Sequence record: MK799832.1
Length of the DNA stretch: 64,000 bases
Strand: one strand, 5' to 3'
Positions 10,466 to 32,872 of the stretch are shown here, piece after piece. Made by a program: the position numbers and the translations under genes. A model generated the notes under the pieces. The model saw nothing but the letters and a program-made list of their open reading frames with translations, ran no database searches and was not told the origin of the DNA. Every line of letters begins with the position of its first letter. The first letter of the stretch is position 1.

Positions 10466-10620
10466 CACAGAAGATGATGCGACTGTTTAATACAGTCACA
10501 GAAGCAAGATCTTATCTGAGAACTAACCATGGTATGACAATTGCGAGAGCAAAACAATATGTTGATAACCATACTACAATGAAAAATGGTAACAAAGTCT
10601 GGGTAGTTCTCCCCTGATAT

Positions 10621-10703
10621 TGGGCGGTCAACATGGCAGGGGTGTTAGGTTGACGTAAGACCCTTTTTATGGTATAAATATAATTACCCCTGTCAATAGA
10701 AGA
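10621..10703 (+). promoter_or_regulatory. Structured leader with T4-type late promoter
   Basis: GGG-CG-GTCAAC...GTTGAC-GTAAGA-CCC hairpin; TATAAATA 10673-10680; loop strand 10635-10644 complementary to 10685-10694. Confidence 0.6.
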
Positions 10704-11195
10704 ATGGACCCGTTTGAAAGTCTAAAGAACTTTGTCTGTGAAGATGACACAGACCACACACCATATGCAACTCCTGAAGGTATCGGACCAAGACGTGGTA
10801 TTCCATGGTCTGATGAAGAACGTGAGTTGCAAATAACCACTAATCCTTACTTTGACCGTGACAATCAGGTTGAAGCAGGAAAGAAAGGTGGTAAAATTAC
10901 AAGAGAAAATAACTTAGGTATCTTCAATCCTGAGTATGATAGAACTCCTGCGGCAAAACTTGGTGGGAGTAAGGGTTCTCGTGCCCAGATAGACAATAAT
11001 ATTGGTATCTGGGGGATGACACCTGAACAACAATCAGAGAGGTCAAAAAGAGGAGCCAAAACAACAACATCTCAACGATGGAAATGTTTAGTCACTGGCC
11101 ACATATCATCCCCTGGTGGTCTCTCTAACCATCAGAAGGGGTTAGGTATAGATTACAAGGACAAATCACTTCGCGTCAGAATTACTCACCTCTAA
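10704..11195 (+). CDS. Homing-endonuclease-derived protein lacking a recognisable nuclease motif
   Basis: GKKGG/KLGG repeats and QRWKCLVTGHISSPGGL tail as in phage HNH/GIY-YIG C-termini; no HNH or GIY-YIG motif visible. Confidence 0.45.
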   Translation: MDPFESLKNFVCEDDTDHTPYATPEGIGPRRGIPWSDEERELQITTNPYFDRDNQVEAGKKGGKITRENNLGIFNPEYDRTPAAKLGGSKGSRAQIDNNIGIWGMTPEQQSERSKRGAKTTTSQRWKCLVTGHISSPGGLSNHQKGLGIDYKDKSLRVRITHL

Positions 11196-11227
11196 AGGTC
11201 ACCTATAGTACGATACCACACTAAATT

Positions 11228-12109
11228 ATGACTTCCACACATATTGAGCACCCAGAGGATATGATTTTGACTGGCGATTTGTCGGTCTTTGATCTTCTGT
11301 ATGACCGAGCACATATCAGTATGAAAATGGATGGTATGTCACTTGTGTGGGGTACTAATCCTGCCAATGGTAAATGGTTCTGTTGCACGAAGTCCGCATT
11401 TAATAAGAAAAAGATCCGTCTGTGTTACTCTATTGACGACATCTTCACTCATTTTGGTCATCAAATCGAAGTTGTAGATATTCTGTCTCATTGTTTCAAG
11501 TATCTTCCTCGTACCGAGAAGATTTACTGGGGTGATTGGCTTGGTTTCGGTCGTACTGATGTGTTTACTCAGAACACTCTGACGTATGTCTTTGACGAAG
11601 CAATTGACCAGAAACTTGTCATCGCTCCTCACACAGTTGTTGACGTTCACGAGGAAATGTGGAAGAATGTGTGTTCACCTTTGATGGAAACATTTGAAGA
11701 CACCACTATGGTCAAGTGGGTGCAACCTTCTGTTGATCGTATTCCTCCCCAAGGATCTGTCCCTAAGATTAACCCTAAGGGTATCAAGTTTCTGACTGAT
11801 AAGGAAGCTGCTAAGGCTAAGACTGCTATCAACGCACTCATCAAATCTGGTCAGTATATTGATGACGCAACCCTGACTGACATTCTTGGTTGTCAACATC
11901 TCGCTAATCTGTATCAGTTTGTGATGGAAATCAAACTGGATATTATGGACAGTCTGATTGTCACCGACGCACCACAATCTTATCTTCCTAATGGTAAGAA
12001 ATGTAGTGGTGAAGGATATGTTTTCCACTCTAACACCTATGGATGTGTTAAACTGGTAGATCGTACCGAGTTTGCATATGCTAACTTCCATAATGGATAC
12101 GGTTCATAA
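11228..12109 (+). CDS. Ligase-like nucleotidyltransferase-fold protein
   Basis: KMDG (motif I), EGYVF (motif IV) and VKLV (motif V) in the expected order. Confidence 0.5.
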   Translation: MTSTHIEHPEDMILTGDLSVFDLLYDRAHISMKMDGMSLVWGTNPANGKWFCCTKSAFNKKKIRLCYSIDDIFTHFGHQIEVVDILSHCFKYLPRTEKIYWGDWLGFGRTDVFTQNTLTYVFDEAIDQKLVIAPHTVVDVHEEMWKNVCSPLMETFEDTTMVKWVQPSVDRIPPQGSVPKINPKGIKFLTDKEAAKAKTAINALIKSGQYIDDATLTDILGCQHLANLYQFVMEIKLDIMDSLIVTDAPQSYLPNGKKCSGEGYVFHSNTYGCVKLVDRTEFAYANFHNGYGS

Positions 12110-12152
12110 TTACTCACCTCCAAACGTCCACACTATTACATACACCACATAA

Positions 12153-13331
12153 ATGATCAAACTCCGCCCTCATCAACAGGACGCTGTTTACGCTCTTCGT
12201 AATAACTCTATCGGTCAAATCATTGTTCCTACTGGTGGCGGCAAGACTCTTATCGCTATCATGGACGCAGTGAGACGATTTGAGATAAAAGTTCCTCGCA
12301 CTATTGTTGTTGTCGCTCCTCGTATTCTGTTGGCAGAACAACTGTCATCAGAGTATCTGGAACATATCACCAATGCAAATGTTCTCCATGTTCATAGTGG
12401 AGAGACAAAACATTTCAGTACCACGAAGTCTGACCGTATCAAATTATTTGTTGATATGTGTCAAACTATGCGTGAACACGTTATTATCTTCACCACATAT
12501 CATTCTCTTCATCGTGTACAAGAGTCTGGTATTGCTGTAGATACGATTTACTTTGACGAGGCACATAACTCTGTTCAACGTAACTTCTACGGTCCCACTG
12601 AGTATTTCAGTAAGCATGCAGATCGTTGTTACTACTTCACTGCAACTCGTAAAACCAGTGTGACTGTGAAGAAACCAGGCATGAACTGGACTGAGACTTA
12701 TGGTCAAGTGATTGCACGTGTGTCTGCACCTGATCTGGTTCAGAATGGTTACATTCTTCCACCTAAGGTCAAGGTGATTGAGATGGATAAGATTGACAAA
12801 AAGTCTCTCACTCCTCATCTTGAGGGTAACAATGTCCTCGCATCTATTGACCAGATTGACATCAAGAAGATTCTGGTTTGTGTTAAGACCACACGACAGT
12901 TACAGAACCTGTTCATGACTGATTTCGCTGATCAGTTGACAGAACGTGGTTACTCTTATCTGTATATCACCGCCAAGACTGGTGCTGTTATCGATGGTCA
13001 GAAAGTATCTCGTGAAGAGTTTTTCAATACTCTGAATGCATGGGGTCGTGACAAGTCAAAGAAATTTGTTGTCCTTCACCGTTCTATTCTGTCTGAAGGC
13101 ATCAACGTGTCTGAACTTGAGGCGGTTATCTTCCTTCGTAACATGGACAGTATTGAGCTTCTTCAAACTGTCGGACGTGTCATTAGGGTTGGTTCTTCTA
13201 CTAAAACCTACGGTATGCTCTGCGTCCCTGTCTACAATCAGGTAGGACTTTCCACTCAAAAGTCTCTCCAGCGTTGTGTTGATATTGTGTTTGAGAAGGG
13301 AGAAATGCTTGACAGTGTAACTCGTAAATAA
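12153..13331 (+). CDS. SF2 DExH helicase
   Basis: PTGGGKT Walker A, FDEAH, FTAT, LSEGIN, QTVGRVIR. Confidence 0.9.
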   Translation: MIKLRPHQQDAVYALRNNSIGQIIVPTGGGKTLIAIMDAVRRFEIKVPRTIVVVAPRILLAEQLSSEYLEHITNANVLHVHSGETKHFSTTKSDRIKLFVDMCQTMREHVIIFTTYHSLHRVQESGIAVDTIYFDEAHNSVQRNFYGPTEYFSKHADRCYYFTATRKTSVTVKKPGMNWTETYGQVIARVSAPDLVQNGYILPPKVKVIEMDKIDKKSLTPHLEGNNVLASIDQIDIKKILVCVKTTRQLQNLFMTDFADQLTERGYSYLYITAKTGAVIDGQKVSREEFFNTLNAWGRDKSKKFVVLHRSILSEGINVSELEAVIFLRNMDSIELLQTVGRVIRVGSSTKTYGMLCVPVYNQVGLSTQKSLQRCVDIVFEKGEMLDSVTRK

Positions 13332-13425
13332 TAATGTGGGCAGTCAGTGTGTCTTGGCGGGTAAATTGACGTAAGTCCCACATTATGATAAAATTCTAAA
13401 TAGTAATGTCATCGCCAAGACACAC
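13331..13425 (+). promoter_or_regulatory. Structured leader with late promoter sequestering the HNH start region
   Basis: Perfect 10-bp stem 13331-13340/13377-13386; perfect 13-bp match 13347-13359/13413-13425; TAAATA 13397-13402. Confidence 0.7.
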
Positions 13426-13908
13426 ATGAGAAATTATCAACTCCCTTCACAGGGTAGGTTACAGGAACTTTTCGCCTACCAAGATGGTGAACTTATCTAC
13501 AAAAAATGTAGGGGAAGACAACCTGCAGGTTCTATTGCAGGGACTAAACATCACACTGGATATTATCAAATATCTGTGGATAAGAAGATATATTTAAAGC
13601 ACAGATTGGTGTATCAGTATCATTATGGTGACTTAGAGCAGGAACAACAAATAGACCATATTGATAGAAACAAAAGTAATAACAGAATAGAAAACTTACG
13701 AGCAGTTGACCAAACACAGAATAATTACAATACTAAAGTAAGAAACAATAATGAATTAGGTGTCAGAGGTGTATCGACCGCACATAGTGGTAGATATTAC
13801 TCTCGTATTGCACATGAAGGTAAAACTGAATATTTGGGGATATATGATACTATTGAAGAAGCCCACCAAGTATATCTAAATGCATTACACAAACTCACAC
13901 ATCCTTGA
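13426..13908 (+). mobile_element. HNH homing endonuclease with AP2-like C-terminus
   Basis: HRLVY...IDHIDRNKSNNRIENLR; GVRGVS...YLGIYDTIEEA. Confidence 0.85.
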
Positions 13909-14060
13909 TTGTAAACCAGGAACATTACCTATCATTGTGGGTGATGGTTATCTGGCTGCAATTCCACTGGTTGGTTCAACAACTAAACTTGTGGTTGTTC
14001 ACAATGGTGTGGTGGTTAAAGTATGTCGTAACAGACAATCTGCGATGACATTGATTAGAA
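13880..14060 (+). pseudogene. Small hypothetical gene cut by junction
   Basis: Reads ...VCRNRQSAMTLIRK, then sequence switches to nrdB in another frame. Confidence 0.5.
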
Positions 14061-14477
14061 AATCAACACCTTGCCATCACTCAGAACATCCTGAACAAGT
14101 GGAGATCAGGTGATGATCCTGAGATGCAACAGATCATGAAGGAAGAAGAAGAGTGGTTGTATGCCATGTTTGACAAGGCTGTCAACGAAGAGAAGAGATG
14201 GGCTGACTATCTCTTCAGAGATGGAAGTATGATTGGTTTGAATGACACACTTCTGAAGAAGTATGTTGAGTGGGTTGCCAATCGCAGAATGAAAGCAATT
14301 GGTCTTAAGCCCGTGTACGATGTCGCTGCAAAGAACAATCCTCTCCCTTGGACACAACATTGGATCTCTTCTAAGGGTCTTCAAGTCGCACCGCAGGAGA
14401 CGGAGGTAGAGAGCTACGTGGTTGGTGGTATCAAACAAGATGTCAAGAAAGACACATTCTCAGGATTCAAGCTTTGA
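14058..14477 (+). pseudogene. nrdB: Ribonucleotide reductase class Ia beta subunit, 3' fragment only
   Basis: ENQHLAITQNILNKW...EKRWADYLF...APQETEVESY; no 5' two-thirds and no nrdA upstream. Confidence 0.9.
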
Positions 14478-14580: not shown

Positions 14581-15003
14581 GTGTGTGACTACGAGAACCC
14601 CTGGTACTTTGAAGGTAAACCCTTTACCTCTGATTCTATTGGGGACAACTTTGGCTTTGTTTATCTCATTACCAATAACGTCAACGAGCGGTGTTACATT
14701 GGTAGAAAGTATTTTTGGTCGTTTAGAAAACCAAAAGGTAAGAGTAGAAAAGTAAAGTCAGAATCTGACTGGAAAAAATATTATGGATCTTGTCCAGAAC
14801 TAAAGGAGGATGTTACTCTTCTGGGCAAGGATAAATTTTCTCGTAAGATTTTGTCCCTACATAGTACGAAGGGAAAGGTTAATTTTGAGGAGACCAGACA
14901 ATTGTTCCTCAATGAAGTCCTGTCTCAAAGGTTGACAGATGAGACACCCTTGTACTACAATTCCAACATCCTTGGTCGATATTACCGCAAGGATTATTTT
15001 TGA
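14581..15003 (+). CDS. GIY-YIG-family nuclease
   Basis: GFVYLITN..N...YIGRK, YYGS, LYYNSNI. Confidence 0.7.
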   Translation: MCDYENPWYFEGKPFTSDSIGDNFGFVYLITNNVNERCYIGRKYFWSFRKPKGKSRKVKSESDWKKYYGSCPELKEDVTLLGKDKFSRKILSLHSTKGKVNFEETRQLFLNEVLSQRLTDETPLYYNSNILGRYYRKDYF

Positions 15004-16175: not shown

Positions 16176-16385
16176 TGGAGATTGATCATCTCCATAGGGT
16201 ATGACAGAAAAGTTGGTGTGGTCAAGCACCCAACATTGTATAGTAAGGAAGGCTGTGGTGGCCACCATGTGACCTGGAGACAGGAGGCATGAGAACCCAT
16301 ACCAAGGGTCCTGAAAGTTCAGAGGTATCATTAACATTAGTGAGACCCCTCTGTTGAAGGTATAATGTAATCCTTCTACCCACCC
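16176..16385 (+). ncRNA. Structured ncRNA between tRNAs, probably manA RNA motif
   Basis: Several hairpins (GGAGAT/ATCTCC, GTTGG/CCAAC, CAGAGG/CCTCTG, GAAGG/CCTTC) and GGTATG/CATACC pairing; manA RNAs are known beside cyanophage tRNAs; not confirmed by covariance search. Confidence 0.5.
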
Positions 16386-16387
16386 AT

Positions 16388-23621: not shown

Positions 23622-23806
23622 CAGCACTGGTCGGTGAAGGGAGGCCCCTTCAATCCCGCGTTTCTTAGTTCGTAAAACTAAGTGGTGGAGTCACTGGACC
23701 CAACTGAGTTTACTAATTCTCCAAAGATTAGTTGGTGCGGATGGAGGAAACTCCCGCCTGAGATTTAGTTATTACTCAGTGATAAAAATAACTTGGCGAG
23801 CCTGAG
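23622..23806 (+). ncRNA. wcaG-like structured RNA (three hairpin + TGGYG units)
   Basis: TGGTG 23683, TGGTG 23733 and TGGCG 23794, each after an A/T-rich hairpin; UGGYG copies are my recollection of the cyanophage wcaG motif. Confidence 0.55.
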
Positions 23807-23810
23807 TACC

Positions 23811-31139: not shown

Positions 31140-31183
31140 CATGGACAGGTCAGGGTTTCCTGACTTACCTAAACTCCCCTTAA

Positions 31184-31285
31184 ACCAAGACCTCTAGGGA
31201 GTATAAACACGTCTTTCATATCCTCGTTAAGGGTACGAGGAAATAGTAACTCCACCATTTCCCTGATGGTCTTACTTTTTTGTTC
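31184..31285 (+). ncRNA. PhotoRC-II-like psbA leader RNA
   Basis: AAGACC/GGTCTT outer pairing, CCTCGT/ACGAGG hairpin, directly 5' of phage psbA. Confidence 0.65.
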
Positions 31286-32371: not shown

Positions 32372-32401
32372 AGTTGACAAAAACTGAATAATATGTTAAA
32401 T

Positions 32402-32428
32402 AAGAGGAGTTAACACTCCTCTTTTTTT
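32402..32428 (+). terminator. Terminator hairpin that also pairs the GAGGAG RBS of the next ORF
   Basis: AAGAGGAGT-TAAC-ACTCCTCTT plus T run immediately before ATG 32429. Confidence 0.7.
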
Positions 32429-32872
32429 ATGCGCGTCTGTAATAAATGTGGAGAAACAAAAGAGTTCAAGTCATTCTCTCCTAAGGGAAAGAGAGTTGAT
32501 GGAAGTAGAAAATATTCTTCTCACTGTAAACCCTGTCAGGCTAAGGTAAAGAAAGAGAGATACTCTCCAGAGAGAAAGAGAGAGAAGGATTTGAAGAGTA
32601 AGTATGGTATTACTCTCAATGAATATGATGATATGCTCACAAGACAAAATTATAAGTGTGCAATATGTGGAACAGACGACACCACATTTTCAAATGGTAA
32701 GAGATTTCATGTTGACCATTGTCACACCACAGGCAAGGTAAGAGGTCTACTTTGTGGTAAATGTAACGTTGCCCTTGGTCACATTGGTGATAATATAGAT
32801 ACTCTTTCAAGGATGATTAACTATCTCAATGATAACCACACAGACCCCCTACAAACTAGCGGAAATTATTAG
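32429..32872 (+). mobile_element. Endonuclease VII-family free-standing homing endonuclease (F-CphI-like)
   Basis: CAIC...HVDHCHTTGKVRGLLCGKCNVALG; located between psbA and psbD as in S-PM2. Confidence 0.85.

Follow-up and report, generated by a model that had tools for sequence, protein, structure and literature searches.

A conserved RNA leader with covarying helices ahead of a mobile homing-endonuclease gene in cyanophage S-B05: a probable translational insulator

We analysed a window of 64,000 nucleotides (nt) from the genome of Synechococcus phage S-B05 (MK799832.1, Kyanoviridae; host Synechococcus sp. MW02), in which base 1 corresponds to base 144858 of the record. S-B05 is a T4-like cyanomyovirus, and the window contains manA, wcaG and PhotoRC-II RNAs as well as ten tRNAs. 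The subject of this report is a control leader of 95 bases (13331-13425, plus strand), which precedes a homing-endonuclease gene of the HNH_3 type. Three helices of this leader covary across related viral sequences, one of them joins the leader to the start region of the endonuclease gene, and promoter elements are located between the two arms of that helix. The leader is probably a portable translational insulator, with the endonuclease being made only from its own promoter or promoters, whatever the transcription of the insertion site.

Direct reading of the sequence bore out every coordinate given in the initial annotation. The outer stem (helix P1) joins ATAATGTGGG (13331-13340) to its exact reverse complement CCCACATTAT (13377-13386). 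This pairing of 10 base pairs (bp) is perfect in S-B05, as had been claimed, but only the inner 5 bp are conserved (GTGGG, 13336-13340, with CCCAC, 13377-13381); the outer 5 bp (13331-13335 side) are lineage-specific, and an uncompensated change is found there in the contigs L144 and L146. Enclosed by P1 is the core CA-GTCAG...TTGAC-GTAAGT (13341-13376), which was present as described: it comprises the 5' side of an internal loop (CA, 13341-13342), the 5' arm of helix P2 (GTCAG, 13343-13347), the 3' arm of P2 (TTGAC, 13366-13370, doubling as a -35-like hexamer, TTGACG, 13366-13371) and the 3' side of the internal loop (GTAAGT, 13371-13376). The P2 loop contains arm 1, an anti-start sequence (GTGTGTCTTGGCG, 13347-13359), whose first base, G13347, is common to the arm and the inner stem. 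Arm 1 is the exact reverse complement of arm 2 (CGCCAAGACACAC, 13413-13425), which abuts the start codon (13426) of the HNH_3 open reading frame (ORF) of 160 amino acids (aa); the 13-bp pairing thus ends at the ATG, again in agreement with the earlier reading. Between the arms are found an extended -10-like element (TG-A-TAAAAT, 13386-13394), 17 nt past TTGACG, and a CTAAATA late-promoter box (13396-13402), with its TAAATA at 13397-13402.

Further versions of the leader were collected from the viral contigs of IMG/VR. An exact 22-base core pattern matched 30 contigs, arm-anchored scans added versions with differing hairpin stems, and 45 distinct versions were left after removal of duplicates and of two false matches; a first loose pattern scan of viral contigs was non-specific and was discarded. 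The internal loop (C-A or C-G opposite GUAAG-N) hardly varies: its 5' side is CA in 38 versions and CG in 7, and its 3' side is GTAAG in 42 and ATAAG in 3. Arm 1 is complementary to arm 2 in every version despite differing sequence, and at least 10 unrelated complementary arm pairs are found (for example GTCTTGGCG, GTCTTGCCGG, GCAGGGGTG, GTAGTTAGGGGTA, TTGTGGGGG and TGCGGGGG, each matched by an exactly complementary partner). The end of arm 2 ranges between 4 nt into the start codon and 10 nt ahead of the ATG.

Covariation was tested in an alignment of 30 versions for P1 (5 bp), P2 (5 bp) and the arms (13 bp). Standard pairs occupy 95.2% of the cells, compared with 35-48% when the partners are slid by 1-3 columns; 10 pairs are changed on both sides, and none of 500 shuffles reaches the covariation score. 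P1 is GTGGG/CCCAC, with the variants GGAGG/CCTCC (once, in contig L176) and TGGGG/CCCCT, and three of its pairs are changed on both sides. P2 is found as GTCAA/TTGAC, GCAAC/GTTGC, ACAAC/GTTGT and GTCAG/TTGAC; four of its five pairs change on both sides, and it is 99% paired. Clean compensatory changes are also seen in the arms (GTCTTGGCGG/CCGCCAAGAC vs GTCTTGCCGG/CCGGCAAGAC), and cognate arms form a duplex of -23.7 kcal/mol, whereas shuffled partners reach -10.0 and non-cognate ones -13.9. As G-U pairs, which would be C-A mismatches on the opposite strand, occur in P2 and in the arms, the folding strand is the plus-strand RNA, and the earlier claim of a conserved structured leader on this strand is upheld. 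No match at the gathering score of Rfam 15 was found for the leader in the window, and none at E <= 10 in 13250-13500. Based on the covariation of three helices and the lack of an Rfam match, the leader has good support as a candidate new RNA family.

Concerning the folding, the full leader has a minimum free energy of -31.5 kcal/mol (z = -4.4; none of 200 shuffles equals it), and this fold uses the long-range helix between the arms. The hairpin alone reaches -18.9 kcal/mol (z = -3.0), and RNA that begins at 13405 lacks structure (z = +0.45). The accessibility of the start region was calculated by partition-function folding as the mean unpaired probability of positions -13 to +3, for three kinds of transcript. 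In read-through RNA the predicted value is 0.25 for all 45 versions and 0.07 for the leader of the HNH_3 gene (copy 2 of the two copies in S-B05; L131 is identical). In RNA beginning at about the sigma70-type start the values are 0.66 and 0.64, respectively, and in RNA beginning at about the late start 0.70 and 0.74. The difference between read-through and late RNA across the 45 versions is significant (Wilcoxon p = 3e-13).

There are two kinds of promoter element between the arms. The T4-type late box, TAAATA, is present there in all 45 versions, 0-10 nt 5' of arm 2 (median 3), so that the start-masking helix is impossible for RNA begun at this box, as had been proposed. By the T4 rule the late RNA would presumably start near 13408, five bases 5' of arm 2. 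The sequence (A/C/T)TAAATA is found 23-33 nt before 14 ORF starts on the plus strand of the window (0.7 expected), and both S-B05 leaders fit this spacing, at 30 nt; NATAAATA has been described as the cyanomyovirus late promoter (PMC2984593). Such positional boxes offer a usable late-promoter map of the window, with plus-strand positions such as 3073, 4764, 44259, 45444, 47045 and 48073. The second element (13366-13394), TTGACG-N17-TAAAAT with an extended -10 of the TGn type, is a near-consensus sigma70-type promoter, and its pattern is enriched in the window (8 found vs 0.6 expected). Most versions keep its TATGnTAnAAT block, where the variation falls on the -10 position that matters least. 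The GCAAC/GTTGC subclass has lost the -35 hexamer and has a weaker sigma70-type promoter, yet the helix is kept, which argues that P2 is not conserved merely as a -35 box. The statement that only late transcripts escape the pairing is not supported in that form, since early RNA from this promoter of the cassette's own would escape as well. Overlapping early and late promoters have been proposed as the 'middle' mode of cyanomyoviruses, phages that have no MotA (PMC2984593).

From these features we infer the transcription starts, the folding order and the effect on translation, and the leader could work as follows. As a 5' control module, it would belong to a mobile homing-endonuclease cassette of the free-standing kind and begin a few bases past the stop codon of the upstream gene. 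On read-through RNA, the hairpin of P1 and P2 with its C-A/GUAAG internal loop would form first and show arm 1 in its loop for fast nucleation. Arm 2, transcribed about 55 nt later, would then pair with arm 1, and the duplex would extend at the expense of the hairpin; the 13-bp helix would cover positions -13 to -1 of the endonuclease start and so block the loading of ribosomes. Transcripts from the promoters between the arms (the late box, (N)TAAATA, always; in copy 2 of S-B05 the sigma70-type extended -10 promoter too) would begin at about 13401-13408, lack arm 1 and keep the start region open. With the start masked on read-through RNA only and arm 1 missing from own-promoter RNA, the endonuclease would be made only from its own promoter, and expression of this kind would allow the module to move among sites and among endonuclease families.

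Several observations weigh against this reading. The conservation of the leader is partly due to ascertainment, as the search patterns fixed either the core or the arm cores; P1 and P2 were absent from the arm-anchored patterns, however, and their variation is therefore not an effect of ascertainment. In a class of versions with G-rich arms, which includes copy 1 of S-B05, arm 2 ends 6-10 nt 5' of the ATG and the predicted masking of positions -13 to +3 is weak (0.57 vs 0.66). Arm 2 contains no obvious Shine-Dalgarno sequence. The presence of an early, sigma70-type promoter between the arms weakens the classical logic of delaying expression until late, and with such a promoter present, expression in the 'late only' sense is doubtful. 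Finally, the masking model leaves the strong conservation of P1/P2 and of the GUAAG loop unexplained.

The arm duplex is 13 bp in copy 2 of S-B05, with a family median of 16 bp and a maximum of 20 bp; the arms leave only 0-2 nt (5') and 0-8 nt (3') of the P2 loop, and in four versions arm 1 overlaps P2. In the nested minimum-energy fold P1 and P2 are dissolved. Coexistence of P2 and the full arm helix looks sterically unlikely, and as the arms take nearly the whole P2 loop and the nested fold dissolves P1/P2, the two helices are unlikely to be complete at once in a static H-type pseudoknot; the hairpin and the full long-range helix are more likely to be successive or alternative states. The description of the leader as 'pseudoknot-like' was right about a conserved leader with long-range pairing, but a pseudoknot as such is not supported. 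Nucleation alone does not explain the conservation of the hairpin and of the GUAAG loop, and this gives room for a role as terminator or 3' stabiliser, for RNase III processing, or for a bound factor.

A regulated switch is one such possibility, in which a protein or a small ligand bound at the conserved C-A/GUAAG loop would control the release of arm 1 and hence the masking of the start. The hairpin and the full duplex are unlikely to form together, which gives two states, and the GUAAG sequence together with a 5' side that is invariant in form (CA or CG) stands out from flanking helices that covary. We nevertheless regard such a switch as improbable: there is no candidate binder, the hairpin is small, no Rfam riboswitch matches even at E <= 10, and a simple nucleation role fits the data equally well. 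RNase III-type cleavage of the arm duplex on read-through RNA, which would separate the helicase mRNA upstream, with a protective 3' hairpin left on it, from the endonuclease mRNA, appears improbable as well. The duplex is placed exactly between two genes and its length in much of the family would suit this idea, for which T7-type processing is a precedent; the 13 bp of copy 2 are however below the length of a typical RNase III substrate, and neither the fixed position of arm 2 at the ATG nor a promoter between the arms is needed for processing.

The gene upstream of the leader (12153-13331, plus strand) encodes a UvsW/ResIII-like helicase of 392 aa (Pfam ResIII/DEAD/Helicase_C; PHROG DNA helicase; annotated as helicase in MK799832.1), and its stop codon is located at 13329-13331, so that helicase transcripts would read into the leader. 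The gene downstream (13426-13908, plus strand) was correctly taken for a homing-endonuclease gene: it matches HNH_3 (Pfam PF13392, 4e-17) and PHROG 99 (1e-54) and, weakly, I-HmuI (1U3E). Leader and endonuclease gene form an insertion of about 565 bp (approximately 13332-13896, plus strand, from alignments with RN05-S and S-B43), which is present in S-B05 and RB11-B and absent from the close relatives RN05-S and S-B43. In the latter two, the helicase gene runs straight into the next small ORF, which begins at the helicase stop (TAATG overlap). The cassette supplies a new 5' end to this downstream ORF (77 aa, 13880-14113, plus strand), which overlaps the endonuclease gene by 29 nt (13880-13908). 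Filled and empty alleles differ at about 10 positions within the final ~30 nt of the helicase gene, as co-conversion or target-site divergence would give. The metatranscriptome contigs that were found (small shares of the runs) belong to cassette-free relatives and depart from the window exactly at 13333. An endonuclease gene between conserved genes and the splice-site-like string GTAAGT might suggest a group I intron or another self-splicing element; this is refuted by the normal stop codon of the helicase ORF, by the cassette-free alleles, in which two separate genes are adjacent, and by the lack of an intron match in Rfam.

A covariance model built in this analysis (R1; its E-values are rough) finds exactly two copies of the leader in S-B05, both in the window and in the whole record, and none in RN05-S or S-B43. 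Copy 1 (10613-10703, plus strand; 38 bits, E 2e-6) has the arms TGGCAGGGGTG and TACCCCTGTCA and the box TATAAATA at 10673-10680. It is followed by an ORF of 163 aa (10704-11195, plus strand) within an insertion of about 570 bp, which is also absent from RN05-S. The 163-aa protein has no Pfam or PHROG match and is unrelated to the L125 and RB11-B proteins; there is a weak Atlas lead to NUMOD3-containing clusters. In RB11-B the model finds the same two copies and a weak third match (PV261925.1, 163596-163703, L333; 18 bits, E 0.26), which may be a degraded copy. S-B05 and RB11-B are about 98% identical in this region, and yet unrelated ORFs (163 aa and 150 aa, the latter at L002:2863-3315 and 81% identical to an ORF in contig L151) are located behind copy-1 leaders that are 99% identical. 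The divergence begins right after the ATGGAC of the copy-1 gene, and the upstream flanks differ too.

Looking at the whole family, the leader begins within about 25 nt of the upstream stop codon, mostly 2-13 nt after it, and one version overlaps the end of the upstream ORF. All downstream ORFs that could be assigned are homing endonucleases (HNH_3, classical HNH, GIY-YIG with NUMOD3, and I-HmuI-NUMOD-like), and a few ORFs have no assigned family. About half of the versions are found after the same helicase gene, where HNH_3, HNH, GIY-YIG or unassigned ORFs stand behind leaders of one family. The occurrence of different endonuclease families at one site and of unrelated ORFs behind a near-identical leader indicates that the leader, as a module, does not depend on which gene it controls. 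The contigs L127, L140, L142, L144 and L263 each contain two or three leaders that differ in their arm pairs and in their endonuclease genes, so that several cassettes of this leader family coexist in one phage genome; in L207 and L235 the 3' end of nrdB itself is followed by the leader and a GIY-YIG cassette. A blastn search with three leader versions against 50,697 phage records matched S-B05 and RB11-B only, the remaining matches being generic, promoter-like AT-rich sequences, for example in T5-like phages. A search anchored on the HNH protein gave no new carriers of the leader: its matches were contigs in which the leader had been found before and one 39% homologue (L342), which has an ordinary terminator and no leader.

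The modular behaviour of the leader recalls the PeSL cassettes of T4-type phages (PMC2839356, PMC4122927), in which a stem-loop and a near-consensus sigma70 promoter are found at the borders of genes that vary between close relatives, with apparent cassette swapping at the motif. The leader could be a composite terminator-promoter joint of this type: its hairpin would end or stabilise the upstream mRNA, the promoter would restart transcription, and the ~95-nt module would be chiefly a patch of homology for cassette swapping, with start masking secondary. The start of the module just after upstream stop codons, its near-consensus sigma70 promoter, its place at indel boundaries between close relatives, and the exchanges at the copy-1 and helicase 3' sites all agree with this idea, which is also compatible with insulation. 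PeSLs are nevertheless different in several respects. They are numerous, in dense arrays within hyperplastic regions, compared with two leader copies in S-B05; their stem-loop is 5' of the -35, whereas that of the leader overlaps it; and they have no late box, no pairing to a downstream start codon and no specific tie to endonuclease genes. A T-run follows the hairpin in many copies of the leader but is not conserved (copy 2 of S-B05 has CCCACATTATGA), and a scan for intrinsic terminators found none at the leader hairpin. Neither a terminator nor a recombination role explains the covarying pairing of arm 1 and arm 2 at the start codon, and the GCAAC/GTTGC subclass keeps the helix without the -35 hexamer. 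As an account of the chief role of the leader we consider such a joint unlikely. In a broader proposal, which we consider rather unlikely, the leader would be an exchangeable, self-contained 'expression insulator' swapped among unrelated selfish genes of cyanomyoviruses; P1/P2 and the invariant C-A/GUAAG loop would be recognised by a protein of phage or host, or would make a tertiary contact, and so gate the release of arm 1, and the leader would be a regulated two-state switch and a recombination joint at once rather than a passive hairpin.

The principle of start masking that underlies the insulator is already known. Pairing of the start region on read-through RNA has been demonstrated experimentally for T4 I-TevI and Aeh1 mobE (PMC2988022). 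The endonuclease hairpins of the T4 family (I-TevI, I-TevII, I-TevIII, segB and Aeh1 mobE; PMC2988022) have in common with the S-B05 leader the sequestration of the start on RNA from upstream promoters, a late promoter inside the pairing with late RNA that lacks the 5' arm, and a homing endonuclease as the controlled gene, although in S-B05 these traits are read at the sequence level. There are also differences: the S-B05 leader carries its 5' arm inside the loop of a hairpin that has a GUAAG internal loop and is itself conserved and covarying, a sigma70-type promoter is also present between the arms, there is no clear Shine-Dalgarno sequence, and one leader family serves at least four endonuclease families at many insertion sites. 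The T4 late genes soc, e, 25 and 26, which have hairpins that sequester the ribosome-binding site (cited in PMC2988022), have the same promoter-dependent translatability; these are resident phage genes and not a portable module.

Another precedent is that of Dassa et al. 2009 (PMC2677866), whose text describes hairpins in the 5' untranslated region before GIY-YIG and other free-standing endonucleases in the 'fractured genes' of cyanophage-like GOS contigs. According to that text, ten hairpins enclose TATAAATA, two conserved motifs are mutually complementary, and promoter-dependent control was suggested. As in S-B05, the loci described there are in marine cyanophage-like DNA and the endonuclease gene runs at its 3' end into the start of the gene after it (13880-13908 in S-B05); unlike S-B05-type cassettes, which sit between genes, they split genes at split inteins. 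The hairpins of Dassa et al. are probably members of the S-B05 leader family. A nested conserved hairpin, an early promoter and covariation are not mentioned in the paper's text. A full-text literature search for the core strings returned nothing relevant. Four features appear to be new: a covarying hairpin nested in the leader, a dual promoter, the range of the family (at least four endonuclease families and many sites) and the evidence that genes are swapped behind a constant leader.

Homing endonucleases need to be expressed without harm to adjacent genes, and a module of ~95 nt would be a compact solution to this in ocean cyanophages: it would bring its own promoter or promoters, silence translation from foreign read-through, and be reused by unrelated endonuclease families at many sites. 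S-B05 on Synechococcus MW02 would be a defined system in which to study promoter-dependent control of translation outside the T-even phages. In addition, the leader marks cassette borders and can aid the annotation of cyanophage metagenomes.

Some further features of the window were also seen. Downstream of the cassette, the 'NrdB-like' ORF 14124-14477 contains only the C-terminal 117 aa of the small subunit of ribonucleotide reductase (Pfam positions 215-281 of 281), and from about 14058 onward the window DNA is 100% identical to that of Synechococcus phage S-H68; RB11-B and RN05-S diverge there. The SegE-type GIY-YIG ORF 14581-15003 (PF19835, 1e-54) has no leader copy upstream, which indicates that not every endonuclease-like gene of S-B05 uses the module. 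The F-CphI-like endonuclease ORF 32429-32872, beside psbA, has a different upstream design (32372-32428), in which TTGACA-N17-TAAATA precedes a strong hairpin (AGAGGAG...CTCCTCT), with a U-run immediately ahead of the ATG. A common motif of about 45 nt (AATTACTCACCTC.AAA.GTC...CTAT...ACCACA.(T)AAAT.ATG) is found at 11179-11227 and 12107-12152, ahead of the DUF6267 and helicase genes; it may represent a different class of promoter or leader, and a string similar to it is present downstream of the cassette site in RB11-B, RN05-S and S-B43. The known Rfam families in the window are the manA RNA (16176-16386, full-length and wedged between tRNA genes), the wcaG RNA (23704-23807) and the PhotoRC-II RNA (31161-31254), which is located directly before psbA.

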